From assembly GCA_964057225.1 (NCBI GenBank), contig OZ059898.1, positions 14,446,001-14,510,000 on the forward strand: a stretch of DNA of 64,000 bases. The letters are read 5' to 3'. The DNA is from Auanema rhodensis. Taxonomy: Eukaryota > Animalia > Nematoda. How positions within the stretch are numbered: position 1 is the first letter of the stretch; the number at the start of each line of letters is the position of its first letter. The notes under the pieces are model-generated. The model made no database searches, was not told where the DNA came from, and saw nothing but the letters and a program-made list of their open reading frames with translations. Positions 5,673-35,791 of the stretch are shown piece after piece. A program made the position numbers and the translations under genes.

Positions 5673-8600
5673 ATGACGACGGGCATTCCCCGTGGTGTCG
5701 GAGCTCCTCCGCCACCCGGTTTGGATCCAAAACGTGGCAAACTCATGTGCATTAAAGTACGAATGTTGGATGATTCCGTTGCTGTATTTCATCTTGGTGT
5801 AAGTTTCATTTGATATTTTTCAATAATTTTGTGAAAGACGCTAAAATACGTCAAAAAGCTTTAGCTTGAGCTGTGGGTACTGACCTGACAATATGTTTGA
5901 TTTCAAGCTTGAAAAATAAGTTTCTTAATTACTCAGATAATTCATTTTACATTTCGTTGTATTTTCTCTTCAAAGGTCGATATCGCATAATCGCTAAAGA
6001 ATATATGTATATCAGTGTCTGTTTGTATGTTTGAGACAGCCACTTGTGACATATGCTTCTCCTCCTCCTACTCCTCATCGTCTTTTTGCTTTTCCTTTTC
6101 TCTCTCTTCCCTTTCTCTTTATCGCATTCTCTACATGTAGATTCATCAATCCATCTATCTCTCAGGTTTTGTGGGCTATCACTTGACCAAAACACGAAGC
6201 TAAAGGCCCGACATTGCGTTTCAAAAAGGCCGAAACTTCAAAATTTATGTCTTTTGGGCCAAACAGAATTTGAACAAATCATTTCATAGAATATCATAAA
6301 TTCCAACAATATCTGAAACAAATGGCTGAAATTTCTTATATATTTTATGATTTTCAGCATAAAGCCATAGGACAAACGTTGTTGGATGAGGTATCACGTC
6401 ATCTCAACCTCTTAGAAACAGATTACTTTGGTCTGGAATTTATAGATAATTTGAGAAATAGGGTAAGTAACAAATGAATTGTACATAAATTTTCTTCAAA
6501 TTTTTTTCCGCGAAAAAAAGGGAAGCGGAAAGCTTTTATAACATACACATGTTTAATACTCATCGAACTCAACTTTTATTAGTATACTGTAGTTATGTGT
6601 GAAATATTAAATTTATTTCCGTATATCTTATTGTTTTAACTTAAATCTTGTAATTTACAGTGTTGGTTAGATAAGGATAAAGCTATCATTCGCCAAATTT
6701 CATGTAGTGATGCTAAATTCTACTTTGTTGTCAAATTTTATAGTCCAAATCCCATTGATTTAGAAGAAGAATATACAAGGTATTTATATTATTTTTCTAT
6801 TTTTTATAAAAAAAACATTTTGTTTCAGATATCTTCTGACTCTTCAGATACGTAGAGATTTAGCTCTGGGCGATTTACATTGTTCCGAATCAACAGCAGC
6901 TTTACTTGCAGCCTATCTCGTACAGGTATAATCATCTATTTCCGTATAAGCTTTCTCCAATATGAATCTTCTTCCAGTCCGATTGTGGTGATTTCTCATC
7001 CGATGATTATCCAGATGCCACATATCTATCACATACGCGCTTCGTACCTAATCAAACATATGAATTTCAACAGAAAATCATGGAAAATCATCGAAATCTT
7101 GTGTATGTTTCACTTTTTTTTGATTAAACTAGTAGTGTATGAGTAATTGAAAGATTGACTGGCACTAATCCTTTATTTCTTCTTTCGTGTCGTTGCAATT
7201 TTTCATTCGGACCTCTTGATGTCTGTTAGAAAAGTAACGAAACATGACAAATCGTAGTAGATGTAACTAAGTGGACTTAAGGGGATTTACTAACTTTATT
7301 ATTCTTACTATAAACTTCTTAAAAAAAAAGAAATGAAAAGAAATCCAAGGAAAATTGTTTGAAATACGAAATATTGGAAATTGAAGTTAAGGCTTTAAGT
7401 TTCTGAATGCTTTTTCATTTTCAGAGGAATGTCTCCAGGTGAAAGTGATTTAGCGCTCTTAGAGGTTGCTCGACGATGTGACTTTTATGGAATTAAGTTT
7501 CATATTGCTAAGGTTGGAATTAATGCTCAAACGCTATATTAATGATTTTACAGGATATTGAAGGCACAGAAGCCAATCTTTCTGTTATGCATTTGGGAAT
7601 TAAAGTTTTTCATCAACTTCATTGCGTTAGTACATTTTCTTGGGCGAAAATTCGCAAATTAAGTTTCAAACGGAAAAAGCTGTTAATCAAACTTCATCCA
7701 GACAGTTATGTAAGTATTCTTATATATTCTTAGTTTTAATACATGAATAATCATATTTTCAGCAATATTATAAGGAAACTATTGAATTTGTCTTCGATAC
7801 ACGCAACGAATGCAAAAATTTTTGGAAGAAATGTGTTGAACATCATGCCTTCTTCAGATGTACTTCTGTTGAAAATTCAAAGAAAGATGGTCGTTTGTTC
7901 AGTAAAGGCAGCTCTTTCAGGTAAACTTCAAATTCAAATTATAAGTAAAACTCAAGTTCTTTCTTTTAGATACAATGGTAGAACTCAGAAGCAGCTTATC
8001 GACTATGTTCGTGAACATCATAAGCGTCGTGAACCTTTCACAAGGTTTGTTATTATGCTCATTGATCATCTATTCTTTTCTTGAAACATACTTAAACATC
8101 CGAATTTCTGCCCTAATCTTGTTCCTAATTCAAATACAAAGCTCTCTTTCTCTGCAGGCCGTTGCGATCAGCTGGCGCCTTGTCTACTAGTCGTGGCGAC
8201 TACATGTGCTCCGGCTCTGTGCAATACTCGATGGTGCGCGAAAAGAAGCCAAATGGATCTCGTCATGATCATCGTTCCATGCCACATCTAGCTACTACAA
8301 CATCTGGCAGCGGCATCGTCAGTGGTAGCACCAGCCATATCAGTGGCCCAGCAGGAGGATCCAGCGTCATCGGCACATCAGCAGGTACATTGGATGCGCG
8401 TATCATCTCATCATCCAGCTCAACGCATCATCCCCCCGCGCGAGCATCTGCCTCATCCACATCTTGCTCAGCATATGCTCATACCATTTTGAATCATCAG
8501 CACTCTAATCCAATCCAAAATAATAGTTTTAATTCTAATAATAGTCATAATAATAACAACAACAATCAATTAACTCATCTGAAACAGCCTATATCCGATA

Positions 8601-10957
8601 CTGAGAAGCTTAAAATATATAGTAATACTAGTTATAATAATAATAATCGCCCTAATCAGCATGATCGAACTGAGCCATCCAATATTCTGAAGGATAATAA
8701 CGTTGAAAATATTTCTTTATCCTTACCTAATGTCCTATCTGATGATATTCAAGTTGTATGTCGTGAACTTGAAATCGAAAATAACTCGAAAAAGCCGCCG
8801 AAATCAATGTCTGGGGATAACTTCTTGGAAATGATTGATAAATCGAATGATTATGATAATGTGAGTGAAGATTCATATCGTTTGTCTGATAACGAGCGTA
8901 GTGTACGATCTGAAGTCGGCACACAGTCTCAGCAGCAGGTCTACAATACCACTTTTACCACCAAACGTATTGGCAATGTGATTGTGAAGAGGGTTGTATC
9001 GCAGACGAAATCAACGCCAAATACAACGGATGATGAGGATTCAGAGCACATTACGTCAACACGGTCAGATATTCAGCCACGTAGTCATAGTCAGCCTCGA
9101 CGACGTGCTCTGAAAGAATATCCATTCTACTCTACTACTGTTGTACCAATTGAGATTGATGGACCAAATGTAGATTTACAAGCTAGATTATCACAGAAAT
9201 CGGCTTCTTCTACTCCAACGTCCACTCTGAATTCACATCATTCTCGTAAACCAATTTATACATCATCTGGAGCACTTCTTCTGAAGCCAAAAGTTATATC
9301 GATGGATCAAGATGAAGCTTCATCATCTTCTTCTGCTGCTTATGCTAGCGTTAAGATTTCTCCCGATTCAGGAACTTACAGTACCATAGTATCTCCTGTT
9401 GTTCGTGAAATGCGTGAAGAACAAATCGTCCGAGTTTCTGGACCTTTGCCAGGAAAAATCCTGACAAAGGAAAATATGGTCATAACACCTGAAGGTATGA
9501 AAGAACGTCGGCAAAAGCCAGTAATACCTCCAAAACCAAAAATTCCGGAACATGGTGTGAAGCCTGGAATGGACGTTGTCGGCCATCCCGTTGTGAACAT
9601 GAGTCAGGATATCAATCGTGCTCGTAGCGAAGATCGTTCAACATCCAGTAGTCACACGAGTCAGACACCTCCTCCTGCTACTCCACCAGCTCCTGTTTTT
9701 TCTGCTCCACCAGCCCCTCCAGCTCCCCCGGCTTTACCTTCACAGGTTTCCACTTTCAGCCAGAATGCAGCTTCATCTTCGATATCTACAGTTCCCGTTT
9801 CGACTGCTACTATAACTAATGCAGAAATCGAACCATTAACAAACACAGTAACAACAACGACTTCAACAGCTTCTCAGCCATCTGGTGCTCGACGTATTCT
9901 GAATCGTCCAGCTCTCATATCAGTCAAGAGCGAAGATAGTCCAGAAATTGAGAAGTGTCATCTATACAACAGCGATATTCCATATACGTTGACGTTGAGA
10001 AATTTAGATACACCGAAGGAAACTGAAACCGTATTCGAGACAACCTCTCTTAAACGGCTGAATAAGCCGACCGCTGCCGAAGCTGCAGCAGCTTTCGAGC
10101 GTAGAAAATCGCTGGATCTGGTACCACGTAAGCGACTACCATCTCCTGGAAACTTCTCTTCTCAAGATCATTCCATATCTCCAACTAGCCCAGATGGAGA
10201 TGTGCTTGAATATCTTTTGAGACGCCGAAGTATGAGTCAAGATCGAAGCTCATTGTCCAAGAAAGGCAAACGTGGAGATGTGCGACGACAGACACAGCCT
10301 GTCAGATTTGATCTTCCAGCTCATTCTCCAGCCTACTCACCAACAACTACGTCTTCCACCCCATTTATTAGTTTTCTTAATGATGACGTCGATGATTGTA
10401 TGTCGGAATCCAGAAGCTTACACGACGATATGGATCGCTTAGATAAGCAGACTCAGAGCATTAGCTCTCTGAACGTAGACGAAAGAGCTGGATCTGAAGA
10501 GAGTGATGCTCTTCCACCTCCTCCGTCTAATCTACGACGCAAAGCAGCTCCTCCTCCACCTCCACCGAAAAGCAAAAGAGCTGCGGAGCGAGTAGTTGAA
10601 ATCAAAGCAACGACAGTATTATCTCTTACCGATGAAGATGCCATGTCTAAATCTGTCGAGGGACCAATTGCTCCAAAGAGCAGTCCTGAGAAAACAAGTG
10701 CAGATGAGCTATCATGGTCAGAACAGCCACAAGTTCCAGCTCCAAACGAACGAATGTCCTCCCTAGAACGCCAGATTCAAGAGTTTGCTTTGATGAAAAC
10801 GTTACCGACCACTTTGAAAGAGATATCAGCAGAAAAGCTTCCAACCGATTCGCCACCATTCATCGACGACTCGCCAAAGGAGAGCTCCGAGCCGAGCATC
10901 GAGGAAACTCCATCCTCTATTCGTACACCTTCCGGCCTCATTGTAACCGATTTCTAA
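5673..10957 (+). CDS. frm-3: FERM + FERM-adjacent protein, isoform with long disordered terminal exon (FRM-3A-like)
   Basis: In-phase exons 5673-5798, 6358-6462, 6661-6779, 6829-6925, 6978-7102, 7425-7512, 7554-7709, 7763-7920, 7970-8044, 8158-10957. Translation MTTGIPRGVGAPPPPG..KVRMLDDSVAVFHLGHKAIGQTLLDEV..DYFGL..VKFYSPNPIDLEEEYTRYL..FSWAKIRKLSFKRKK..FWKKCVEHHAFFR..GSSFRYNGRTQKQ, matching C. elegans FRM-3/FARP as I recall it. Ends GLIVTDF*. Confidence 0.93.
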
Positions 10958-13900
10958 ACGCTTGAATGTGATTATATGTTTGTGGCCAATCAGCCTTAAT
11001 TGAATAAAACAAAGCTAATTTTACGAGAAAAAAGGCTGATTGCGTCGACCATAACAGCATGAATTTTCAATTTTTTGTCTGCTTCATCTCCGCTTCATTT
11101 TATTTTTTTTCAAAGCTTGTACGGCATTCCATACTCCCTCTCTTCATCAGCTTTTTTTTGTTTTTATTTATTTTTTACCACAAAAGAAGAAACATATTCT
11201 AAAAATTTTTTATTATCTTCTTTTCAATTAATTCATAGAGATTTTACAAGTTTTGCCTTGCCTTTCACCCCACACTTCACCTCATTCACAGCTCACACCT
11301 GCACAAACCTTACAAGTTACTTTCAAGACTTATATTGCACCCAAGCGCGCACAAGCAGCAGCTGCAGCAGCCTTTACTGTGTTTTCACTTCGTTTTTTTG
11401 ATTCGTTCTCTGCTTTTTTGGATATAAATCAATAAAATATAATTAATTTTAGCTAATTATATCCAAATATAGCAGGTAAGTATTGCATGAAAGATGTTTT
11501 TAGTTGATTTTCAATCTTTCCGGCTACCAACCTCATCCATGTTTTTCCTTCCTACTTAAAGCTTGTGCCTTCGTATATTTGTGATAAAGTGGTGCTTATA
11601 TAGATTTTATAAAATATTTATATTTATAATTATATATAAATATACAAATATATATATATATATAATTAGTTTTTGAAATGAAAAACAGAAGATAAAAGAC
11701 GGTCTTCTTCAAGTTTATAGCAATAGCAAAGCTTTTGTTACTGCGATTTTGAACTTGTAAGCTTGATTCTTCTATTTTCATGATTTTTCTTTGTTTTTTT
11801 TTAATTTTTTTCAACAGAAAACATACGAAGAAATTACCTTCAAAGGCCATTTTGATATTGCGAGATTAGACAGCGGGTTAAATATATATTATTATAGTAT
11901 AAACTATAATTAAAACTAGCATTTCATCAATAAATATAAATATAGGCTTAATATATAGTTAAGTAATAATATTTTTTTTTATTTTTAGATGAGTTTATCT
12001 ATTGATTGTTTTAGTTTTTTCGTACCCTTTCTCTACCTTTCCACATATAGTCAAAACTTTTTTTTTCTGTATTTTCTTTTCACAACACTTGTAGTCGTAA
12101 TACTGTTAGATATGTAGGTTCCACTCACTCTCTTAATCTCTCTCTCTCTCTCTCTCTCACTCTTTCTCTCTCTCTCTCACTCTCTCTCTCACTCACTCTC
12201 TCTCTTTCTTTCTAGTCTTACAACACTCATATTCATTGCTCATTGCCGAACTTGTTATCACGTATTCCACCACAACTTTTTTCCGATACACATCTCCCAA
12301 CATCTTCTGCGCCTTTTTTTCAAAAAATAGTTTGATCTCTCTCCTAATCCTTCCCTCTCTCCCTCCTACCCTCCCCGCCCCCTCTCTCTCTCTCTCTATC
12401 TCTCTCTCACTGTATGTACTGTATATGTATTGTTCAAAGTCCTCATAATGCCTTTTGTTTGTTGTTTTCTACTACACTTGCCACACTATATACCATATGT
12501 ATGTCTTTGTTTATTAATTTTATTTTTTAAAAGAAATATAAATTGTAAATAAAAGTTTATTGAAACAGTAGTGTAGTGGTGGATGTCTCAGTTAGATCAA
12601 GCTTTGTTGTTGGCTTTTCGTCCAATGTCCACTCAATCAGCATGATCCCAAAAGAAAGCTCAGTATGGGATAGGCATAAACTTATTTTAAAACTTATTCT
12701 TTAAAGATGATTATAAGATCAAATACTACAATAATTATTATTTTTTCAATCATTTCTTTAGATTATGCTTCATTTAAAAAGAAGAAAGAAGTCATATATG
12801 GTGTTAATTCAACATTTTCAACTGAAAGTATAGCTTTGACGGAGCCAATAAGCCGCAGTCATACACAAAAAACAAATACGTAATCTGAAACTTTATAAGC
12901 ATTTTCATCTGAACAAACTTGAATTTTAAGTGTTCGATTTGGTTTAAGTACAAGTTTAACATCAAATATTGATAGTAATCCCAATCTATATCGAGCTGAT
13001 TCAAGTGATAGTGGTGGCTTATCACTAGCATATGATATGAAAACTAGTAAATGTGGTAAGAATATATTATATGAATAGAATATATGTATATATATCTATA
13101 TGTATCAAATATTATTTAGATAATAGTTCAAGTATTCATAGTACACGAAGTATTCTTCCGGATTCTTTTGAATGTCGTCTCGATCCTGAATCAATGTCTG
13201 AAAAGTCTGATAGCTATCTAGAACGAGAAGATTCCCTCATAGGCCAACGAGTAGCTTATTTCTTTTTTGTTTTTTTTACAAAAATTTCAAATTTTCAAGA
13301 CATTCCTAAAGCCGTCCGTGTCACTTGTCGATATTGCTAAAGATTTATTGAATATTGAAAGAACAACATCAAATGATCTAAGAATTATATCTCAGGTTAT
13401 CAAATACTTCTTCGATTAACATCAATTTAATCTTTGCAGACACTATTCAATAAATTAGAACCTTTATTGGATAAATGTAAAATTCTCTTAGAATTATTCA
13501 ACGTTTTATCTGATTTACATTGTTCACAATCACAATTTCTTGATGAATTAGATCAAATTACGAGGTAAGAACCATGATCACTAATAACTTGTACTAGTAT
13601 AGTATTTATGAAACATACATGTATACAATTATTTCGATATACTATGAATACACATATGTATATGTATTTTTCATAAAGTCATATACATATGTCATCGGAA
13701 TGTTGTATTCAAAAATGGTTTTATTAAATTTCAAAAAATTTAATTATTACAGTACTCATCAACAGGATATTGATGATTTTCCGCAAAAAGTTCTATGTGT
13801 TGTTCATAATGTTGTTCCTATGTATACATCATTAATTCAACAATATCCAATTTATATCTCAGCTTTAGATGAACTATGTCGATCACAAATACCATTCAAA

Positions 13901-15667
13901 ACAGAAATCATGTATGTTTCTTCATGATTTATGCTCATTTACTCAATTTCTGCATTCTTTTCAGGAAAATTGAATCTTCAGAAGAATGCTTCATCCCTAT
14001 TAACTGGATTCTCATGAGAATTATTCACCGAATTGCATTCTGGCAACCGGTACGACCATTGATTTTTAAAAAAAAAATTTTTTTTCTCTTCGAGACATTC
14101 CCATAATATGAAAACAATTGAATTTTCAGATATTAGTTCGACTTGTTGAACAACAGCTGACTGATGGAAAAGAGGAAAAAGATATGACATCAGCCCGAGT
14201 TTCACTTGAAAAAGCCTCAATTTTTTGTGAAAAAAGTAAAAGTCAACGTGAAGCTTTAATAGAATATGTAGCTTTGCTTCAAATTGAGAAAGACTTGGGA
14301 TCTCCAGGACTTCTCTCACATCCTAGTCGAGTAGGCTTTACACCTTCATATACATCTCAGTGACTTAGATATCAATGACAATCTGAGCAGAAACTTCATT
14401 TGAAAGGAAACAATCTACTCATTTCAGCGTTTACTCCGGATTGGATTTGTTGAACGATGGTCACAGAAGGGATTAACAGCTAGAGTCTTGGTTCTCTGCT
14501 CCGATAGGCTACTTCTTGCTCATCGTGTTAACAGTAACGATCATCCATTTGCTGTACAAGGTGAAATTAAACTGAAAGGAATGCTTGTAAGTGCATTTAT
14601 CATCATATCAAAGCTATACGTTGAGTATTTATTAGGTTGAAGATGGAGATACTTATAACGTAATTGGTAGACAACATGACGTCATTACAGTACATAGTGG
14701 AGATAAGTCAATTGTAATCACAAGTACATCCAAAGATGAATGGCTAGATGTAAGTACATGTAACATCTGACTCAAAGCAATGCATCTTTCCAACTATTTT
14801 TATCAGAAAAAAAAATAAGAAATTTCAAAAGTCCATAATATCCGCTTTTCATGGACTTATTGGCGAAAAAACATTTTTTTTTTCAATTTTAAGGACATGT
14901 GTACAGCTGTGAAAACGGCAGCCAAATGTCGTCTTGAGTTACCACAGCTGCAACTGGATAAGAACGATGGTCAGAAAGATGATTCAGAATATATGTCAAG
15001 TATGTTTTGATTTTTGTTCATTGAATTTTCAAAAAAATAGCGAAACGTTTCAGGATCAAAAGGTGAGGAAGAGAATCGAACAGGACCAACTCCATTGCAA
15101 GTGTGCTGGTATCGCAAATCCACATTAGGCATCCTAGATATATATAGAGTAATTCTTTGAAATATAGTTATTTTTGATATAAAAAAAAGGAAAATTCTTG
15201 AAAAATCAACAATATTTTCAGATCGTTTCCAATACACAAGCTGGATATCTTTTAAGAAAATTAAGAAATTCATCAGGATGGCAAAGACTTTGGGTTGTTT
15301 TAGCTGGTCAAGCATTATTTTTTTATAAATGTCATCAAGTAATATTATTTTATATTTCACATAATTAAACTTTTATTTATAGGGTGAAAAACCATTAGCT
15401 AATTTACCATTAATGGAATACGGTTTTGCTATGCCATCTGTTGAAGATATGATTATTCATGATTTCTGTTTTAAGCTCTTCTATGGTTCACACAAATATT
15501 TCTTTCGTACAGATACATCTTACAGCTTTCAACGGTATGTATTATCTTTCAAATCCCTTCTTCATCATCAGTTTCTTACGATTTACAGCTGGACAGATGC
15601 CATTCGTCTATGTGCCATCAATAATCGTCAAATGGATCGTATCACAGCTCTTTCATTACATATATAA
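5673..15667 (+). CDS. frm-3: FARP-type long isoform FERM-FA-DH(RhoGEF)-PH-PH (FRM-3B-like)
   Basis: Downstream in-phase exons 12762-12879, 12931-13046, 13120-13250, 13300-13395, 13440-13564, 13753-13911, 13965-14049, 14130-14330, 14428-14586, 14636-14749, 14894-14999, 15054-15148, 15222-15338, 15383-15534, 15589-15667. FARP motifs IAKDLLNIERT, CFIPINWILMRIIHR, LQVCWYRK, GYLLRKLRNSSGWQRLWVV, YFFRTDTSYSFQRW. The junction to the FERM part is inferred (phase-1 donor after 8384). Confidence 0.82.
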
Positions 15668-15985
15668 TCCAATTTTTATGTTTCTTTCTCTTTTTAATTT
15701 TTTATTTCCGGTTCAACATCATCTCAGCATAATCAGAATAGTATAAGGATATATCTTGTCATCAAATATTCATTTGTACTCAGTATCAGAAAAACAAAAA
15801 ACAAATTAGTTGTCATCTCAGGGTTGAAAGTATTAAAACAAATATTTTATTTTATAGTATTTAGGGATATTGATTACTATCTTAATGTTTTTTTAAATGT
15901 CTAATAGGTAGTAGTATATTAGTTAAATTACGTATGTATATGTACATATATAGATTATGACCTCGCATATCAGTCTCTCTCTCTT

Positions 15986-16026
<41 letters not shown>

Positions 16027-16645
16027 TCTCTCTCTCTCTCTTTCTCGTTTCTACGTATCACTAGATTGCATATCAATTTATTATTTCTGTCTTCCGATAA
16101 TCATCAAAAATTTATTATAAAATTCTAGAACATCATTGATATTAATCATTATATGAAGACTTTGAAACAATCATGTTCGTGTATGTTTCACATACTAATA
16201 TTATTGTTGAATAAACTTTTAAAAATGTTAAATTTGCGGAGTCGTGAATCTTTAAAATAATAAAATTATCAAATACCTCTGTTATATAGAATATGACAAA
16301 TCATATTAAGCTTGATTAAGCTTGAAACTTATTTACAAGTTTCATTCTTGTACTTCAATCAGAGCTTGAATTCACGTGTTAGACAGAAGTTTACATAACT
16401 TAAGTCAATGATAATAAATTAATTAATTAAAAGAATAAATATTATAATGAACAGAGAAATTTTTAAAATATTTTTAAACATTCTATAGTACGAATTACCT
16501 TTTTTTCAAATTAGCATATACAGCTAATTCAATTTCACGTCAAAAAATTCATGTACGTGAAATATCTTCACTTTCGATTTAACACTAACTGGTCGGTCTT
16601 GTACGGTGTTTGAACCATCGCACTGGAATCTTTAGAATTTCCAAC

Positions 16646-17568
16646 ATGCGCTACTTGGCACAATCTGAAAAAATGACTGACACAACTGACATTTCATCTT
16701 ACTCAGCAGGTTTGTTCTAAAGAAAATCTTAAATACGTTGAATGAGTATGAGTGAAAAAAATGTTTTTTTTCCTTCTTTTTCTGGATTTTTTTTTTATTT
16801 GAACGCTAGGGAACCACCCAGGATACATCATACATCCAATATCAACTCAATATACATTACTTTATTATTTATATATAATCTCTGTATAATATAGAAATTT
16901 TATAACTATACTAAATTTCACTTTCATTATTAGATTGTTTTCTATACTTATATTTTGAATTTTTAAACTTCTGCAAGCTCTTATCATGCTCCGTAATAAG
17001 TTGCCGTTTGAACTTTTCAAATTTGCTAGTGATAACAAACGATATATCTAAGATATATCATTTAATTAGTATTAGTATTATAGTTATACATTACTATATT
17101 TTCAAAAATATTATTTAAAATTTATTTTTTCTCATATACTACTTACAAATATTTGTTTATTTCAGAATATTCTATAACAGAGAGTATGGTAAATCTGATA
17201 TTTGGATTTGGATCGTCAGCATCGAAACCGTCTGGCTTTCGATGTTGTTCCAAGTTCGTACGACTACAATCATTTTCAGCTTCATCTCACTATCTGATAG
17301 CTTCTTCAGTACGTGATGAACGATATCGTGTAAGTTCTTTTTCTAAGTTGCTACCATTGCATCATGAGCTATGTATCCCTCATTTTCTTTTTTTTTAGTC
17401 TATCATTTCATATTAATAGTTTTTCATTTTACTTCCTTTTCATATTTTTCATTAAATTTTAGGAAGCTGTATCCCTTGGTATTCCTGTTATATCAACATC
17501 AATACTAACTGTTCTATCAGAATATAGCTCTATGGAACTAATACTACAAGAGGTAAGCAAATTGAATA

Positions 17569-17603
<35 letters not shown>

Positions 17604-20600
17604 TAGAGAGAGAAATAAGGAAATATAGAGAGATTGAATTCATAATTTCATTCCCTCATTTTCATTTACATATTATTCATTCATTTTTACTTGTTTTCTA
17701 TTTAAATACAGTTTTTTTGGTGTAACTGAGTAAAAACAAAACAAAAAAAATACTAATTGTCATCATCATACTCACCATTCAATATCTGTTTTCCTTTTCT
17801 TTTCTTTTTGTTTTATTATTATTATCAGTATTATATAATATTTTTCTCATTTAAATTTATTATTATACTATACTACACTATAGTATAGTATAGTATAGTT
17901 TAGTATATATAGTTAGTAGTTTTTTTTCAATAACATATATATATATTCAGATAGATAGAGAGAGACAGAGAGAGAGACAGAGAGAGAGAGAGAGAGGGAG
18001 AGAGAAAGAGAGAAAGAGAGAATAGAAACTATTAGTACTTTTTAACTACAAATCAGGACATTTGTTCTTCTTTTATCTTTTGTAGGCCGATCGACATCGT
18101 CTTCCTCGTTTCAAAGGCACATTCATCTATCTTCATCTAGATGAGACTCTAAATGAGACGAACCAAATTAGACAGGAAATTATGACAAATGGTGGGCAAT
18201 AATTGGAATATTTTTTAATAATTTTCCTCTTAATTTCATTTCTTATCATAATATTCAATCAAATTAGTATATACTATACTATATGAGAGACAATAACAAA
18301 CTTCCTTCTAGGTGGATTAGTTGTATCCAATTATACTCAAGCAACACATATCATTGCTAAAACATCAGATGATAATACATTACCTCCTATATCCCCTAAT
18401 CAACATTTAATTAGTACTCGAGTAAGTTTTCTTATAAACTTGTTTCTTAACTTAAAGCTTTGCTAGAGAATTAGTATAGTTAACGAGAACGAGGGCAAGG
18501 ATATTTATGCAAATTCTGTAGAGTTCTAACAACATGCTGAAGAGAAAAAAATGGGTTTATATACAATAGCATAGTTATTTATTTATTTGTTCAACTAATA
18601 GATTTGAGTCAGTAATTCGCAATCCAAAGCATATACGTGTGTTTAGAGAGAGAGAAAGAGAGAGAGAAGGGGGAATAGAAGGGGAAGGAAGAAGAAAAAA
18701 TAGAATTTTTTAAAGAAAAATGAACAGATCTATTATTAATCATAAAAAAAACCTTCAATTATGCCATTTTACTTAACTATATTAGTGTCACGTCCTCAAG
18801 CGCATAATTAAGCTATCGTGCATAAGCATTTAAAATGATTTTTTTTCGTGAAATGAAAAAAAAACGATTAAATTGCCATGTAATTTGGACTGAAAAACAC
18901 GGAACGTAAAAATTTGAAGTTAATTGTTTTGTTTACATAATGCATCATTAAATTCTAAAAATTCTATATATAGTTATTTATGTATTTACTTCAATATTTA
19001 ACAATGCAAATTAGATTTATTCACTATATAATCTATATAATATATAAATAGAAAATTGATAAAAATACATGATTAATATGCTTATTTATGTGAACATATT
19101 TTGATTTTCAGTGGATTCATGTGAGCCATGATTTGAATTGGTGTGCTGATGAGAACATTTTCGCTTTGCGCAAGCCCACAAAGCTCAATCGTCGGCCGGC
19201 TCGCCGACGTCTGACCCTTACCGGCTATATAAAGTAGGTATTTTATGGATATGCCATATAAGAATAATTTACTATATATATGGTATATAGTATATATGAA
19301 CATATAATTGTGTAAAAATCTATTATGTCAGAGGGCAAGGACATAGAGATTCGGCTACTAAATACAAACGATACCAGCTGTGTCAAGAGCTTTACAGCTC
19401 CGAAATACGGTGTTTGCAGATGATGGACTTTTTATCAAGAGTATGAAATCATTTTAATTATATTTATATAAACATATACAAGTTACATAATAGAAAATAT
19501 ATTATACTATATGTATAAGTATTATTTTGATTATTTTTGATTCAATAGTTCATGATGTTTTCGACAATATTGTAGAGCTAGAGCTATGCGGGAAGTAACA
19601 TATCACGCATCCCTACTCTGCAAAACGGATGCATTGAACTCATTACGGAGTACGACAAAGACTAATTGATTATTTTTGTTGTTTTTACAGATAAGTACTG
19701 ACAATTACTTGAATGATGAACAGAATTTAATTATATTTGGAAGTTTTTTGCCCATGAAGAATATTCACTCGGAACTAGTTGAAAAGATTGGAAAAGTTTT
19801 AAATACCTGGGATGATGAAAGCATGATTGGTAATGTGAGTTTCTTAGTTTATTTTTTATTAAAATATGAACTTAATACTCCATGATAGCTAGATCTGATG
19901 AGATTTGAATGAAAATCCCCCCCCCTCCTCTTCTGTGTCTCTCATACAGAGTAGTAGTACATGCATATCCATCTTCATCCCATTTTCCACTCTATATATT
20001 CCCTTTTAGCCATTAAACTGCTTCTCCGTTATGTTTAACGGTATGCTTATATTCATATATTGTATAGTTAGTATAGTATTGTCTACTATATAGTTATTAT
20101 AATAATCAATATTATTATACATATGTATGAATGAGGCTGTGTTTCTTATGACTTGTAACCAACTAACTAACTGCCTATTTATTCTTTTGGGGGTGGTGGT
20201 GTTCATTGCTCGGTTAAGTCTTTTATCTTTCGCCTTTAGTCCATTTAATTCCATTTTCTTTAAGTTTAGTTTTGAAATTACTTTAACTGAACTGATATAC
20301 GAAATGGATGAGAAACCAACTAATCTGAAGATGACCAGTGGGAGATACATAAGAGATGGGAGAACAAGAGAGTGAATGGTCAACTAGATAGATTGGTGAG
20401 AGAGAGAGGGTAGATAGAGAGGGTTAGAAAAGAGGAAGAGGGAAAGAATAACCAAGGAGTGGATATTTAAGGGTATATTTAGAGGACTTTCTACTAACTA
20501 AACTAAAAGAGACCGAATGAAGAGATGTATTGGCAGATAAGGAAATGCTGAGAGATTTAGAGAAACATACAAAATGTTTGAAAGAGAAAGAAAGAGAGAG

Positions 20601-22221
20601 AGAAAGAGAAGTACGAGAGAATGAGATTGGATAGAGATGTGAATGGTTAGTCCAAATTAGCGCCTAAAGTAATCGACTATTCAGCCGTATCCTCGTTCCT
20701 ATTTCATCTACTGCCCTCGGCTATATCGGTCTGTGAAATCAATTTTCTGCTTGGGCAACAGTGAAGGATTATTAGAAGAGAAATAGCTAATTTCATGCAA
20801 AAAGTAAACAGTTTGTGGATTAGATGAAAAGCCGTCTGAGTAGGAAATAGTCATTGATTGAAGGAGGTAGACAATGAGATGAGTGATGGAGAAAAAACCC
20901 TCAACTGCCAAAATGAGTGAGAAAGAGAGAGAAACAGAGAGAGAGCGAAACAGATTTAGACGGATAGAAAGAAAGAAGAGTCATATACTTGAAACAGTAT
21001 TCTCAAACATTTTGTTTCTTCATATCAAAAATCAAAAATCTGTTTCAGTTCTTGCTGCTTTTTAACTTTTTTTTTCTTCCAATCTTGGCCAATATTGATT
21101 AGCTTTTTTATGAGTAACCATTAGACAAGACAGATTTCATATATTCAAATAGAATGAACGACGAGGCTTTAGAAAAACTGGCTCCAGATGTAAGGTCATT
21201 CACTACATCTCTACTTCGACTCATACATACAAGACGAATGAAGAAGAGAAAAAGAAGAATAATAGGAGTAAAAAAAGTTCTTTTGTTGGAAGATATTAAA
21301 TATCCCAAAAAAAAGCTCAAGTTGATTGTCCTAAGTTCATGAGGCACAACGAACGAGAAAACATAAAGAGAAATAAGACATGTGGGAGATTTATATCGTC
21401 GAAGAAAGGCTATATCATCCCTATCTATGTATTGATAATCTTCAAAACGAGGATTGCGGGTAACTGAATGGGGGGAAAGAGAGAGATGTTGATGATGATG
21501 ATGATGGAATATAACATTAGTTTAAACTTCACTTTTCATAAATTCCGATTATAACCTTATTCTCTTGAAGACACATCAAATGATATTCCTTCTTTCTTTT
21601 TTTCATATCCCCCCTCCCCGCCATCCCACCCTGAATCTAATGTACTGAAAGATGTATCGATATAACAGTTTTATCAGAATGTTGCATTTGAAACTTCATT
21701 TTGAGTGGTTGATTGGGTGATGTAAATTGGGATTGACTTCAATTCCCTTCTGCAACTTCAATGTCATGTTTTAGATTTTTGTTGAAATTGCGGGAGATAT
21801 GGAGAGAGGCTATTTGGAATATTTTCAACAGTTGGAATTATGCCAGGAAACATTCAAAGAATGCAAACAAAAAAACAATAGATTTCGATCATATATAGAG
21901 GTTAGTTGAGCATTTTCGGAAACAAGTTAAAAGGTATGAAGCCAATAGCCATAAGAGAGCTCCAATTAAAGGGTGAGAGGGAGAAAGAGAAAGAGGGTGA
22001 GAGTGAGATGATTGTTTAGATGGCAAGATTGTTTCGTATATAATATATATATATATATATACAACAAAACGTCATAAATATTATAGGTAAAGGAACAAGA
22101 TAGATCACTCGATAAGCAAAAGATAGAATATCTGTTCAGTATGCCATATCAACAATTAACCAGCAGAGTACTTGTGACCCTAAAAGGTAATATCAGATGG
22201 CTGTTTTCAATTTCTTTTCTT

Positions 22222-22269
<48 letters not shown>

Positions 22270-23619
22270 TTATCTTTTCTTATATATTCATACTATAAAG
22301 AACTATAACAGCAATTCATGAAAAGACCGATAAAACGTCATCGGATTACATTTGTCTTCTGGCCGCTATAGATGCAGTTGATCAGATTTTGAGGTTCGTT
22401 TGCTGGAACACATAATTTGATAAAGGAATGCAATGACAAGCATAACGTTCAGAAAATGTAACGAATGCAAGAAGTTAACAGCAGACAGCCGCCTAATTCT
22501 GAAGCAGATCAAAGATGTACCGGTAAATACAAGCTGTTTCATGTTTCTGTTCTTCCTTGTCGTGATTTTGCGCAGAACTTAAACTTGAAGATTTCATGAT
22601 AATGAAATCACTTTTGGTCTTATAGGCACATGTGATGTGTTCCAAAGGAATGTTTATCGCTCAACATTCTTTTCGATGTGTATTACCGGAAAAAGAAAAC
22701 AAACTTTCTCAACTAATTCAACTCTACTTGTTCGATGATTTGTTAATAGTATGATACGATGATGATAATGTTGATCATCATCATGCCTATGATTCATACA
22801 ACTTGAGAATTGCAGATTGCTAAACGCCTAAATCAAACGTCATGTGTATCACTGAGTTTGAGAAAAACAAAAGAAACGAAAAAGGCAGAATTCACTGAAG
22901 TTTATCCATTGTCCGGAATTCGAGAAGTGTGCCTCTTGTCGGATGGGCCATCGAAAGCTTTTGTTCTCACTTTACGAAACGTTCAAGATACCCAGTGGTA
23001 CCTAGACGTAATTGATAGTCTTGAAGAATCGATAGAATTCGTGAATAAAATTGTTGACCAGGTATTTATTTTAAGATCGACAGCTAAACTTGAGTCGTTT
23101 TTAGGTTAATAGGATATGTAACAATAGATACCTTGAGGTGTCATCTAACTCAAACAAAACTGAAATTTATAAAACAGAATGGGTTGAACGTTCACAAAGT
23201 CATCGGTTTGTAGGCTTATTTAGTTCTTTGTACACATACTCATGTTCATGCTTGAAACTGAAAAAGACCACTTCAATATATCTTTTTAGGTCTCGATCAC
23301 CCGCCCGCACCTTATCTAATATCAGAAATAGTATACGACGAACACTATCTTTCAAATCCAGAAGTAGGAGCCGAATAAGAAGAGAAGGTATCGATCCCAA
23401 TATTTTTGTTTCCACCTCGACAGAAGAATGCACAGTAAAGATACGATTCAAGTAATTATGTAATGTAGAACTCTTCAGAAGCCATTACAACATATACTCG
23501 AGGTCGATAACGTTGAGAACCATGAGCCTGTGAACCCCTACGATGGAATAAAGCATTTTAGTCCGTTTCCCAACCTAAGATCTCAAAGAGAGCGGTCAAT
23601 TCTAGATGACTGCTGTTGA
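16646..23619 (+). CDS. Divergent ECT2/Pebble-like RhoGEF (BRCT-BRCT-DH-PH-polybasic tail), ~680 aa, 17 exons
   Basis: In-phase exons 16646-16709, 17166-17329, 17463-17552, 18086-18191, 18312-18421, 19112-19233, 19332-19440, 19691-19834, 21775-21900, 22087-22186, 22312-22393, 22453-22522, 22626-22748, 22816-23061, 23105-23205, 23290-23434, 23479-23619. BRCT motifs HYLIA..ERYREAVSLGIPVI, GG..ATHII, WIHVSHDLNWCADE; DH motifs KRYQLCQELYSSE, IFG..IHSEL..WDDESMIGNIF; PH motif LYLFDDLLIIAKR; tail IRRTLSFKSRSRSR. Confidence 0.85.
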
Positions 23620-24335: not shown

Positions 24336-24944
24336 ATGTTCCGTACTGTTCAGTCTGTAAGATCCATCTCTGTTTCTGCTGTACGCAACCAAGATTTGGT
24401 TCAACAGGCTTTTGTTAACAAAATCAGAGAGCTCGGAAAGAAGGGAGGAGATCTCGTTAACTCTGACCCCTCTGTAAGTTGAAAATTTGTATGATTTTGT
24501 TGCTATTCAACCGTAGAATAGTGAATGATGATTAATTTGTGTTTGAAACATAGTAATTTCGTTTTACATGTGCATGTCTTTAACATTCGTCATTCCAGGT
24601 CAAGAAGGCCCTACAAGATGAGCTTAACAAGCTTGCCATGAAGTTCCAACTTGCTAATGCTGATGTTGTTTCAAAGATCCCAATCAACTTCGAGACTCCA
24701 AAGGTATTTAGTTTTTTAAAACCTCTGTTTAATATGTTTTTCTTCTCCAGGTCGAATCTTCCACCAAGGAACTTCTTGAGGGAAAGACTGTTGCCTCTCT
24801 CTTGGAAGAAGTAAACAAGGTATGTTATTAATATATTATTTTTGTTGTAAGCTGTATTTTCTTCAGGAGAAGAGCGAGTACCTTGCCTCTCGTGATGCCA
24901 AGAAAGCTGCTGAAGCCGCTCGCGCTGCCGCTCTTAAGCAATAG
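24336..24944 (+). CDS. atp-4: Mitochondrial ATP synthase coupling factor 6 (ATP5PF/F6)
   Basis: Exons 24336-24473, 24599-24703, 24751-24819, 24867-24944. MFRTVQSVRSISVSAVRNQDLVQQAFVNKIRE..SDPSVKKALQDELNKLAMKFQLANADVVSK..YLASRDAKKAAEAARAAALKQ* matches C. elegans ATP-4. AATAAA at ~24966. Confidence 0.95.
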
Positions 24945-34500: not shown

Positions 34501-35791
34501 ATGGTTAAATTGGCTCAATTTGCCAAGCATCATGTGCCTGAAGTACATCATTTGGATACAGAAGAATTTGTTGAGAAGAGAACCAAAGCATTGGTAGAAG
34601 AGGGATCTGTCGCAGCTTGTATGGCTATATCTAATACAGAATCTAAAGCTGCTCTTGAACTTATTGCTAGGTTTCTATACATAAATATTCGAAAGCTTAT
34701 TTTCTCGCTCCAGAGCTATATCAGCATTCAGTGATTACGATGATCTAAGAGGCAGAGTGATCAGTGAAGGAGGAACTAAACTTTGTCTCAGATTGTGTAA
34801 GGATGCTACACCAGAAGGAAAGATTAAAGCTTCACACGCTTTGGCTAAGCTTGGATGTAAATCTGATCCTAACATTGTATTCCCTGGTCAACGATCTTAT
34901 GAAGTAGGCTTTTCATATTATAGCATTTGGTAAACTCAAGCTTCTTAGGTTGTAAAGCCAATGGTTGATCTTCTTCATCCTGAAGTTGACAGCAAAGCCA
35001 ATTATGATGCTCTTCTTACCTTAACTAATTTGGTAATTCTCTATCTATATATAAGTGTAACATCATTTCTTTGCTTTTCCAGGCCAGTATGTCAGATTCT
35101 GTTCGTAAACGTATAATTAAAGAACGAGCTGTGTATAAGATTGAGGAATTCTGGTTTATGACTGAGCATGAATATCTCAGAGCTGCGGCAGCAGAATTAC
35201 TTCTTAACCTTTTGTTCCTGGAAGATTTCTTCAAGGAAGTTGCCAGACCCGGCACTGATAAACTCAAGTTATGGGTCCTTTATGCTGCCGAGGAGGATGA
35301 GCGGCTGGCTCGTGCATCTTCTGCCGGATTTGCCATTTTGACCGAAGATGAGGAGGTCTGTACAAGAGTGTTAGAAGAGATTAAGAGTTGGCCAGACATT
35401 TTCAAGGAGATTTGTATGCATGAAGATCCAGAGGTAAATAATCCTATTTCTTTTTCTAATTTCCGTGTTGAATTTAGGCCCAAAGGCGGGGATTGATGGG
35501 AGTCGCCAACATTATGAAGAGTAGTGAGAAAAATTGCTCGGAAATCGTAGCTGTGAGTTGAATTAAATTAAACTCAACCAATAATTTTCTAAATAACCCG
35601 CCTCTTTCCAGAGTGAAATCTTCCGCATTTTGGTCGCTGTCTCCAAGTTAGGAGCCAAAAACAAGGAAAGAGAAGGCTCAACTGAACAAGCTGTGATTTG
35701 CTTAGAAGCTGCTGAGAAATTTGGTCTGATAAAGCCAACTGATAGAGAGATATTTGAAAGAACTGAGAATTTGAGTACAATTTCTGAATAA
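31562..35791 (+). CDS. unc-45: UNC-45 myosin chaperone (TPR + central + UCS), 22 exons
   Basis: MVAEVVSAESLRDEGNNAVK..LHRNRALARLKIDDFEGAEADCTK..KNLMHMDGGIPRGWSW..VRALVGLCKCASAGGDD..EEMVKLAQFAKHHVPE..NYDALLTLTNLASMS..EEFWFMTEHEYLRAAAAELLLNL..KFGLIKPTDREIFERTENLSTISE*, split by ~21 mostly 40-60 nt GT-AG introns. Confidence 0.97.

Follow-up and report, generated by a model that had tools for sequence, protein, structure and literature searches.

ECT2, which activates RhoA, is a central and usually well-conserved switch of animal cytokinesis. Its triple-BRCT module, kin to that of TopBP1, is the accepted route of its control by centralspindlin, and the S-loop of human ECT2, between BRCT2 and the DH domain, bears CDK1/PLK1 control sites. 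Residues T153 and K195 of the human protein coordinate phosphate and are needed for MgcRacGAP binding (PMC5177604). ECT2 carrying T153A/K195M still supports cytokinesis of human cells, but ECT2 that has lost its PH domain and polybasic cluster does not; plasma-membrane binding via these two elements is essential in human cells, and BRCT1-mediated recruitment to the midzone is not (PMC5177604). In Caenorhabditis elegans, ECT-2 (LET-21) has a cryptic BRCT0 domain, with residue E129 located in the linker between BRCT0 and BRCT1. A BRCT0 domain is predicted in fly Pebble as well (PMC10238489). Here we describe an ECT2-like gene at positions 16646-23619 of the forward strand of a 64,000-nucleotide stretch of the genome of the nematode Auanema rhodensis (hereafter the window), composed of 17 exons and coding for 680 residues. 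We consider it likely that this Auanema lineage has a single ECT2 (Pebble / C. elegans ECT-2) orthologue and that the locus encodes it, in a compact and fast-evolved form.

Domain anatomy compared with human ECT2

Our comparisons made use of a 647-residue 'unnamed protein product [Auanema sp. JU1783]' present in the database with no name or described function (hereafter P0001). Strain JU1783 is Auanema melissense (PMC11796466, PMC9984802). The joined 680-residue protein was aligned with P0001 alone, and the database searches were performed with single exons or with P0001 as a stand-in. An exhaustive phmmer search of 1.84 billion cluster representatives with the 82 residues of exon 14 returned P0001 as the one true relative, 83% identical over the exon; the three other matches were short patches in very long proteins, and no ECT2 outside the cluster of P0001 was retrieved. 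When P0001 was compared with the window by tblastn, it proved colinear with each exon from exon 2 onward. The two proteins are colinear and 74% identical overall, with identities of 87% in the DH domain, 80.5% in the PH domain, 76% in the linker, 68.5% in BRCT2, 62% in the tail and 56% in BRCT1. Like the product of the window gene, P0001 begins at BRCT1 and has a short linker, the PYQQL, KCN and RRTLSF motifs and a C-terminal DDCC. Its annotation lacks the 28-residue leader of the A. rhodensis protein and otherwise misses nothing of note.

With a score of 65.2 bits over profile positions 2-180 of 180, the DH domain of P0001 lies well above the curated Pfam cut-off for RhoGEF (27.6 bits; those for BRCT_2 and ECT2_PH are 27.3 and 27.6 bits, respectively). 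It is the sole domain to exceed its curated threshold, which gives a measure of how diverged the protein is. The first BRCT repeat of P0001 gave sub-threshold matches only, to BRCT (17.3 bits) and PTCB-BRCT (16.8 bits). In the PDB, the best match of P0001 is human ECT2 (6l30, E 6.5e-25), in an alignment that runs through the PH domain, and the next family is ARHGEF11, with an E value of 1.4e-3. For the 195 N-terminal residues of P0001, the best match is the ECT2 BRCT module (4n40, E 0.0058), followed by TopBP1 BRCT1-2, while an N-terminal profile built from the two species matched BRCT1-BRCT2 of the TopBP1 BRCT0-1-2 module (E 6e-4). Unlike the Auanema gene product, TopBP1 has kept BRCT0 and has no DH-PH module. 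PDB searches with exon 2 or exon 8 alone yielded nothing useful. In a protein atlas based on language-model features, the clusters nearest to P0001 are those of ECT2, with a score of 0.95, compared with 0.85 for other RhoGEF families. An AlphaFold2 model of P0001 residues 1-195, with the window exons as its sole alignment, had a mean confidence (predicted local distance difference test) of 30.8, too low to be of use. Lastly, the predicted BRCT1 and BRCT2 precede the DH domain in the order and with the spacing found in ECT2, every Pfam score of this region being sub-threshold. By its sequence, the gene thus belongs with the ECT2 family, and it is a variant within that known family, not a new kind of system. 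A reading made beforehand from the letters of the window alone (the sequence-only reading) had described it as ECT2-like and strongly diverged, and both descriptions hold, with human ECT2 as the best PDB match and Pfam scores that are mostly sub-threshold.

As in human ECT2 (6l30, 4n40), which is the best solved-structure match of P0001 for both its N-terminal and its DH-PH halves, the protein is predicted to be composed of BRCT1-BRCT2, a linker, a DH domain, an ECT2-type PH domain and a polybasic tail. Exon 2 aligns with human BRCT1 by way of P0001. The Glu residue of DH conserved region 1 is kept (ELYSSE in Auanema, ELYQTE in human), the exon 7 motif being aligned with human KELYQTE, and so is the late-DH Asn (KCNE and HINE, respectively). 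The PH motif LFxFxD can be aligned (LYLFDD with human LFLFND), as can the tail motif xRxFSF within the basic cluster (RRTLSF with human TRAFSF). The polybasic stretch SIRRTLSFKSRSRSRIRRE, which is conserved in P0001, aligns with the human tail around RAFSFSK, and by analogy it would have a membrane-binding role. BRCT2 has kept its Trp (WIHVS, compared with human EWFWGS), and the position of human K195 is occupied by Arg, a conservative replacement. Retention of the catalytic Glu and Asn positions and of the polybasic tail, which the sequence-only reading had put forward, is thus borne out by the alignment to human ECT2. All the motifs that it quoted are present, namely RRPARRRL in the linker, TSILTVL, SSE (within ELYSSE), PYQQL (within SMPYQQL), CNE (within KCNE) and RRTLSF.

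In contrast, nothing in Auanema corresponds to the first ~105 residues of the human 4n40 chain (BRCT0 and its linker), and only 28 residues of the A. rhodensis protein precede the first BRCT1 strand. BRCT0 is absent from the transcript, P0001 starts at BRCT1, and the ECT2_BRCT0 profile (PF21243) matches nowhere in the A. rhodensis genome. The expected orthologue, C. elegans ECT-2, differs by having this domain ahead of BRCT1, where the A. rhodensis protein has these 28 residues. As C. elegans ECT-2 has a BRCT0 and one is also predicted in fly Pebble, its absence is a derived, lineage-specific loss common to at least two Auanema species. Further differences affect the Trp helix of BRCT1, with TSILTVL in Auanema where human ECT2 reads PEWIYKAW, and the position of human T153, which, when the profile alignment is extended without gaps, would be a Gly followed by Ser-Ser. 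The linker between BRCT2 and DH, which corresponds to the S-loop, has 32-34 residues, about one third of the ~95 found in the human chain, and the S-loop is therefore as short as had been claimed. In the DH domain, SMPYQQL replaces human RPVQRL, and PYQQL is found in both Auanema proteins. Relative to human ECT2, the C-terminal block NPYDGIKHF..P.PN...RERSILDDCC is new, and it is conserved in both Auanema species. The di-cysteine that ends it, to which nothing is comparable in the aligned human ECT2 chain, could be a putative lipidation site. In total, the protein has 680 residues, compared with 851-1205 for the ECT2 clusters listed in the protein atlas.

By analogy with ECT2, the DH-PH module would catalyse the exchange of guanosine diphosphate for guanosine triphosphate on RhoA/RHO-1 at the cell cortex, which would then drive assembly of the contractile ring in cytokinesis. 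Plasma-membrane binding would fall to the PH domain together with the polybasic RRTLSF tail, and the two remaining BRCT domains would keep the enzyme autoinhibited or dock it to activators. With BRCT0 gone, BRCT1 degenerate and the S-loop cut, regulation via the N-terminus has probably been simplified, with catalysis and membrane binding kept. The pattern of constraint in Auanema, strong in the DH-PH part and tail and weak in BRCT1, fits the functional hierarchy established in human cells (PMC5177604).

Gene structure and transcripts

The gene was assembled both manually and by script, and the outcome reproduced exactly the 17-exon, in-phase, 680-residue model of the sequence-only reading. It starts with the ATG at 16646 and ends with a TGA whose last base is 23619; every intron is bounded by GT and AG, and all exons are in phase. 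The GC content is 38% in the exons and 30% in the introns, and the surrounding DNA is AT-rich. The longest open reading frame (ORF) that contains an exon of the gene has 99 codons, and the gene is indeed hidden from a list of ORFs, as had been noted.

DNA of the window was found in 15 sequencing runs, four of which, all from one study, were judged likely to be RNA. These four runs contain 23-29% of the sampled words of the stretch, close to its exonic share. The evidence that they provide consists of assembled contigs rather than raw reads, and it is thus informative on structure and presence, not on level, strand or exact transcript ends. We compared the contigs with window positions 16191-22190. 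Nine GT..AG joints in contigs of the four runs correspond, base for base, to the junctions of exons 1 to 10 in the model (16709/17166, 17329/17463, 17552/18086, 18191/18312, 18421/19112, 19233/19332, 19440/19691, 19834/21775 and 21900/22087), and the loose end of a contig at 22186 runs 30 bases into the start of exon 11. The gene is therefore real, expressed and spliced. Contigs of 2192-2200 nucleotides start at 16577-16587 in all four runs, and in three of them the contigs stop at an equal distance, 996 nucleotides beyond exon 10. Upstream of the ATG at 16646 there are in-frame stops, the translation of 16577-16708 reading I*H*...M. Such starts, together with these stops, leave no room for extra N-terminal coding exons, in agreement with the earlier claim that BRCT0 is missing. 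Spliced transcription, which had been proposed as a check of the model, is documented by the spliced contigs of the four runs for exons 1 to 10 and the start of exon 11.

Exons 11 to 17 were placed from their splice signals and phase and from their colinear match to P0001. Similarity to P0001 rather than RNA decided three boundaries: exon 12 begins after the acceptor at 22453, exon 15 starts at 23105 and the last intron spans 23435-23478. The alternative exon 12 acceptor at 22426, poorer than that at 22453, would give nine more residues, which are absent from P0001. A model of 16 exons and 638 residues that ends at the TAA at 23455 was dropped, because, judged by P0001, the last exon is conserved, exon 15 extends further and the acceptor of exon 12 lies later. 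Candidate exons within intron 8 (~20010-20040 and 21113-21190) were excluded by the RNA joint 19834/21775.

Intron 8 is rich in GA repeats and harbours a minus-strand ORF of 125 residues at 20006-20383. In two of the four likely RNA runs, short contigs with a depth of ~3 map to it (20782-20971, 21316-21483 and 21474-21766); these may represent precursor RNA before splicing, or small transcripts of independent origin. Several introns of the gene contain long (GA)n/(CT)n microsatellites, at 17561-17619, 17950-18024, 18631-18675 and 22220-22270.

Copy number and alternative readings

We searched for other ECT2 genes in the 181-Mb assembly of 112 contigs, in which the window is C6:14446001-14510000. 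P0001, exon 2, exon 14 and the BRCT1-2 profile match only C6:14.463-14.470 Mb in the whole genome, even at E values of up to 10. The RhoGEF scan of the genome gave 35 matches in ~19 loci, and the scans with BRCT families gave ~8 loci, including canonical BRCT genes such as a PTIP-like gene at C4:10.286 Mb and a multi-BRCT gene at C7:13.70 Mb. Nowhere in the genome is a BRCT match found within 70 kb of a RhoGEF match in the order and on the strand expected for ECT2. ECT2_PH and ECT2_BRCT0 had no match in the 181 Mb, in scans that included no positive control for either family. A canonical second ECT2, with ordinary BRCT and DH domains, should have been detected.

Two candidate pairs were rejected in the course of these scans. 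On C4, BRCT matches at 10.286 Mb and a RhoGEF match at 10.291 Mb lie on opposite strands (+ and -, respectively), and the guanine nucleotide exchange factor (GEF) gene has SH3-like exons. In this region (C4:10.284-10.294 Mb), the PTIP-like gene, which has several BRCT exons and a Gln-rich N-terminus, and the SH3-bearing RhoGEF gene are convergent, and the pair mimics the ECT2 signature in a plain co-localization scan. On C7, a BRCT_2 match at 11.547 Mb is 75 kb away from a RhoGEF match and in the wrong order.

Several points weigh against the locus being the single, fast-evolved ECT2 orthologue. In P0001, the matches to BRCT_2 (26.0 bits, E 1.2e-5) and to ECT2_PH (23.3 bits, E 7.9e-5) are both below the curated cut-offs, and the window exons taken singly give matches to RhoGEF for exon 9 (E 0.0083) and to ECT2_PH for exon 14 (E 0.039) and nothing else in Pfam. 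Word-based protein searches with P0001, whole or limited to residues 196-530, returned P0001 alone and no Caenorhabditis ECT-2. Exons 12 to 17 were placed by homology and lie outside the RNA-confirmed part of the gene. Full GEF activity is not certain, because the near-invariant Arg of PVQRL is Gln in both Auanema proteins. Finally, the six-frame family searches of the genome missed even the present locus, and a second copy, equally diverged and unlike this one, could for that reason escape detection.

A first alternative also takes the gene as the sole ECT2 orthologue, but one that has been rewired, being freed from control of its BRCT domains by phospho-CYK-4 and held at membranes by the PH domain, the polybasic tail and a lipid anchor on the C-terminal di-cysteine. 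We regard it as rather unlikely. The absence of BRCT0, the loss of the BRCT1 Trp and the low conservation of BRCT1, which at 56% identity is the least conserved domain, are in its favour, as is conservation in both species of the final block ending with DDCC. Furthermore, the position of T153, a phosphate-binding residue in human ECT2 (PMC5177604), is Gly in both Auanema proteins, as judged from the ungapped extension of the profile alignment. Nevertheless, the Ser/Thr directly after this Gly could substitute for T153, and the Arg at the position of K195 is a conservative change. Both BRCT2 and the overall tandem layout have been kept and are conserved, suggesting that the N-terminus continues to function. 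Lipidation of a terminal di-cysteine outside Rab proteins is, for its part, a guess from general knowledge. The strongest form of the idea, that of a sole Auanema ECT2 stripped and rewired by deletion of BRCT0, degeneration of the BRCT1 phosphate pocket, reduction of the S-loop to 34 residues and gain of the di-cysteine, such that RhoA would be activated independently of centralspindlin docking, is in our view unlikely. If true, a centralspindlin-independent ECT2 could relate to the asymmetric spermatocyte divisions of the three-sexed Auanema.

The sequence-only reading had favoured a lineage-specific paralogue, i.e. a specialized extra copy beside a canonical ect-2, which, speculatively, would be released from CYK-4 control and used for instance in germline or spermatocyte partitioning. 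The gene has diverged far beyond expectation for ECT2, it has no BRCT0 whereas C. elegans ECT-2 has one, and genome-wide Pfam scans can miss diverged, exon-split genes such as this one. The spermatocyte divisions of Auanema are unusually asymmetric (PMC9984802), which would also suit such a role. However, neither P0001, exons 2 and 14, the BRCT1-2 profile nor the family scans revealed a second ECT2-like locus, and ECT2_PH and ECT2_BRCT0 match nothing in the 181 Mb. Canonical BRCT genes are detectable by the same method and none lies beside a RhoGEF match in the right order, and with ~19 RhoGEF loci detectable, a canonical DH domain should have shown up. The paralogue claim thus finds no support in the genome, and we hold an extra copy to be improbable. 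That reading had itself named a sole ect-2 with a normal branch length, together with 5' exons that restore BRCT0, as observations that would speak against it. The gene is the sole ect-2 found, while its branch length is abnormal and no overlooked 5' exon brings BRCT0 back.

That the locus is an ECT2 relic in decay or without function, or else a wrongly joined gene model, as its high divergence, sub-threshold family scores and replaced DH Arg might suggest, is very improbable, given a frame of 680 codons intact over 17 exons, spliced mRNA with the same ends in four runs, and the same architecture and open frame, with no frameshift or stop in either species, in a second Auanema whose identity is highest in the catalytic DH domain. 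We saw neither frameshifts nor stops in the A. rhodensis model or in P0001, and a frame that stays open across all 17 exons in both species, while conservation is strongest in the catalytic core, argues for purifying selection on the gene.

Surroundings of the gene and significance

The features of the gene are collected in Table 1. Upstream, the neighbour at 8162-15700 of the same strand looks like another large, diverged RhoGEF-type gene, with a low-complexity exon of 931 residues (8162-10957) followed by exons resembling DH conserved region 1 (13267-13419) and two PH-like domains. Only its last PH exon (15198-15368) has a Pfam match, with an E value of 4.9e-4, and the gene is absent from the RhoGEF matches obtained across the genome. 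Should this reading be right, two poorly recognizable GEF genes would stand in tandem. Downstream, ~700 nucleotides past the stop codon of the ECT2-like gene, the first exon of the next gene (24336-24482, + strand) codes for mitochondrial ATP synthase coupling factor 6 (Pfam ATP-synt_F6, E 6.2e-5). The neighbours had been described as well conserved, which applies to this ATP synthase exon and not to the poorly recognizable gene upstream. Further downstream, an ORF of 141 residues (35071-35496, + strand) has no Pfam match; it may resemble the C-terminal part of an UNC-45-type chaperone.

Table 1. Features of the ECT2-like gene, in window coordinates
Feature	Position	Strand	Evidence
5' untranslated region covered by RNA contigs; in-frame stops	16577..16645	+	Contigs of 4 runs and translation
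Exon 1: start codon, 21-residue N-terminal leader, no BRCT0	16646..16709	+	RNA joint 16709/17166, 4 runs
Exon 2: BRCT1 first half (NLIFGFGSS ... HYLIASSVRDERYR)	17166..17329	+	RNA joints; 66% identity to P0001 residues 1-47
Exon 3: BRCT1 second half, signature Trp lost (TSILTVL)	17463..17552	+	RNA joints; alignment to human KPEWIYKAW
Exon 4: BRCT2 start	18086..18191	+	RNA joints; P0001 match; BRCT_2 match on P0001 residues 86-150
Exon 5: BRCT2 middle	18312..18421	+	RNA joints; P0001 match
Exon 6: BRCT2 end (Trp kept, WIHVS), basic linker RRPARRRL	19112..19233	+	RNA joints; 67% identity to P0001
Exon 7: linker end (34-residue linker), DH conserved region 1 ELYSSE	19332..19440	+	RNA joints; 90% identity to P0001
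Exon 8: DH	19691..19834	+	RNA joints; 70% identity to P0001
Intron 8: 1940 nucleotides, GA-rich	19835..21774	+	RNA joint 19834/21775, 4 runs
Exon 9: DH	21775..21900	+	RNA joints; Pfam RhoGEF E 0.0083 (exon alone); 84% identity to P0001
Exon 10: DH conserved region 3, PYQQL for PVQRL	22087..22186	+	RNA joint 21900/22087; 91% identity to P0001; human alignment
Exon 11: DH	22312..22393	+	First 30 bases in RNA loose end; 90% identity to P0001
Exon 12: DH end, conserved Asn (KCNE)	22453..22522	+	TTCAG acceptor at 22453 fits P0001
Exon 13: PH start (LYLFDD)	22626..22748	+	65% identity to P0001; aligns with human LFLFND
Exon 14: core of ECT2-type PH	22816..23061	+	Pfam ECT2_PH E 0.039 (exon alone); 83% identity to P0001 residues 441-521
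Exon 15: post-PH	23105..23205	+	Start picked since VNRICNNR matches P0001 VNKICNNR
Exon 16: polybasic cluster with RRTLSF	23290..23434	+	Aligns with human TRAFSFSK in polybasic tail via P0001
Exon 17: conserved C-terminal block NPYDGIKHF...RERSILDDCC, stop codon	23479..23619	+	77% identity to P0001 C-terminus, E 1.9e-13

As single exons are near-invisible to Pfam, genome scans missed the locus and word searches found a single Auanema protein and no further relative, there is a risk that a core cell-division gene is wrongly called missing in Auanema. A sole-copy ECT2 without BRCT0, with a degenerate BRCT1 and hardly any S-loop but with a constrained DH-PH-polybasic part, would be a natural 'minimal ECT2'. 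It would complement the result obtained in human cells that membrane binding is essential and midzone recruitment is not (PMC5177604), and it would let one ask which N-terminal controls a whole animal can spare.

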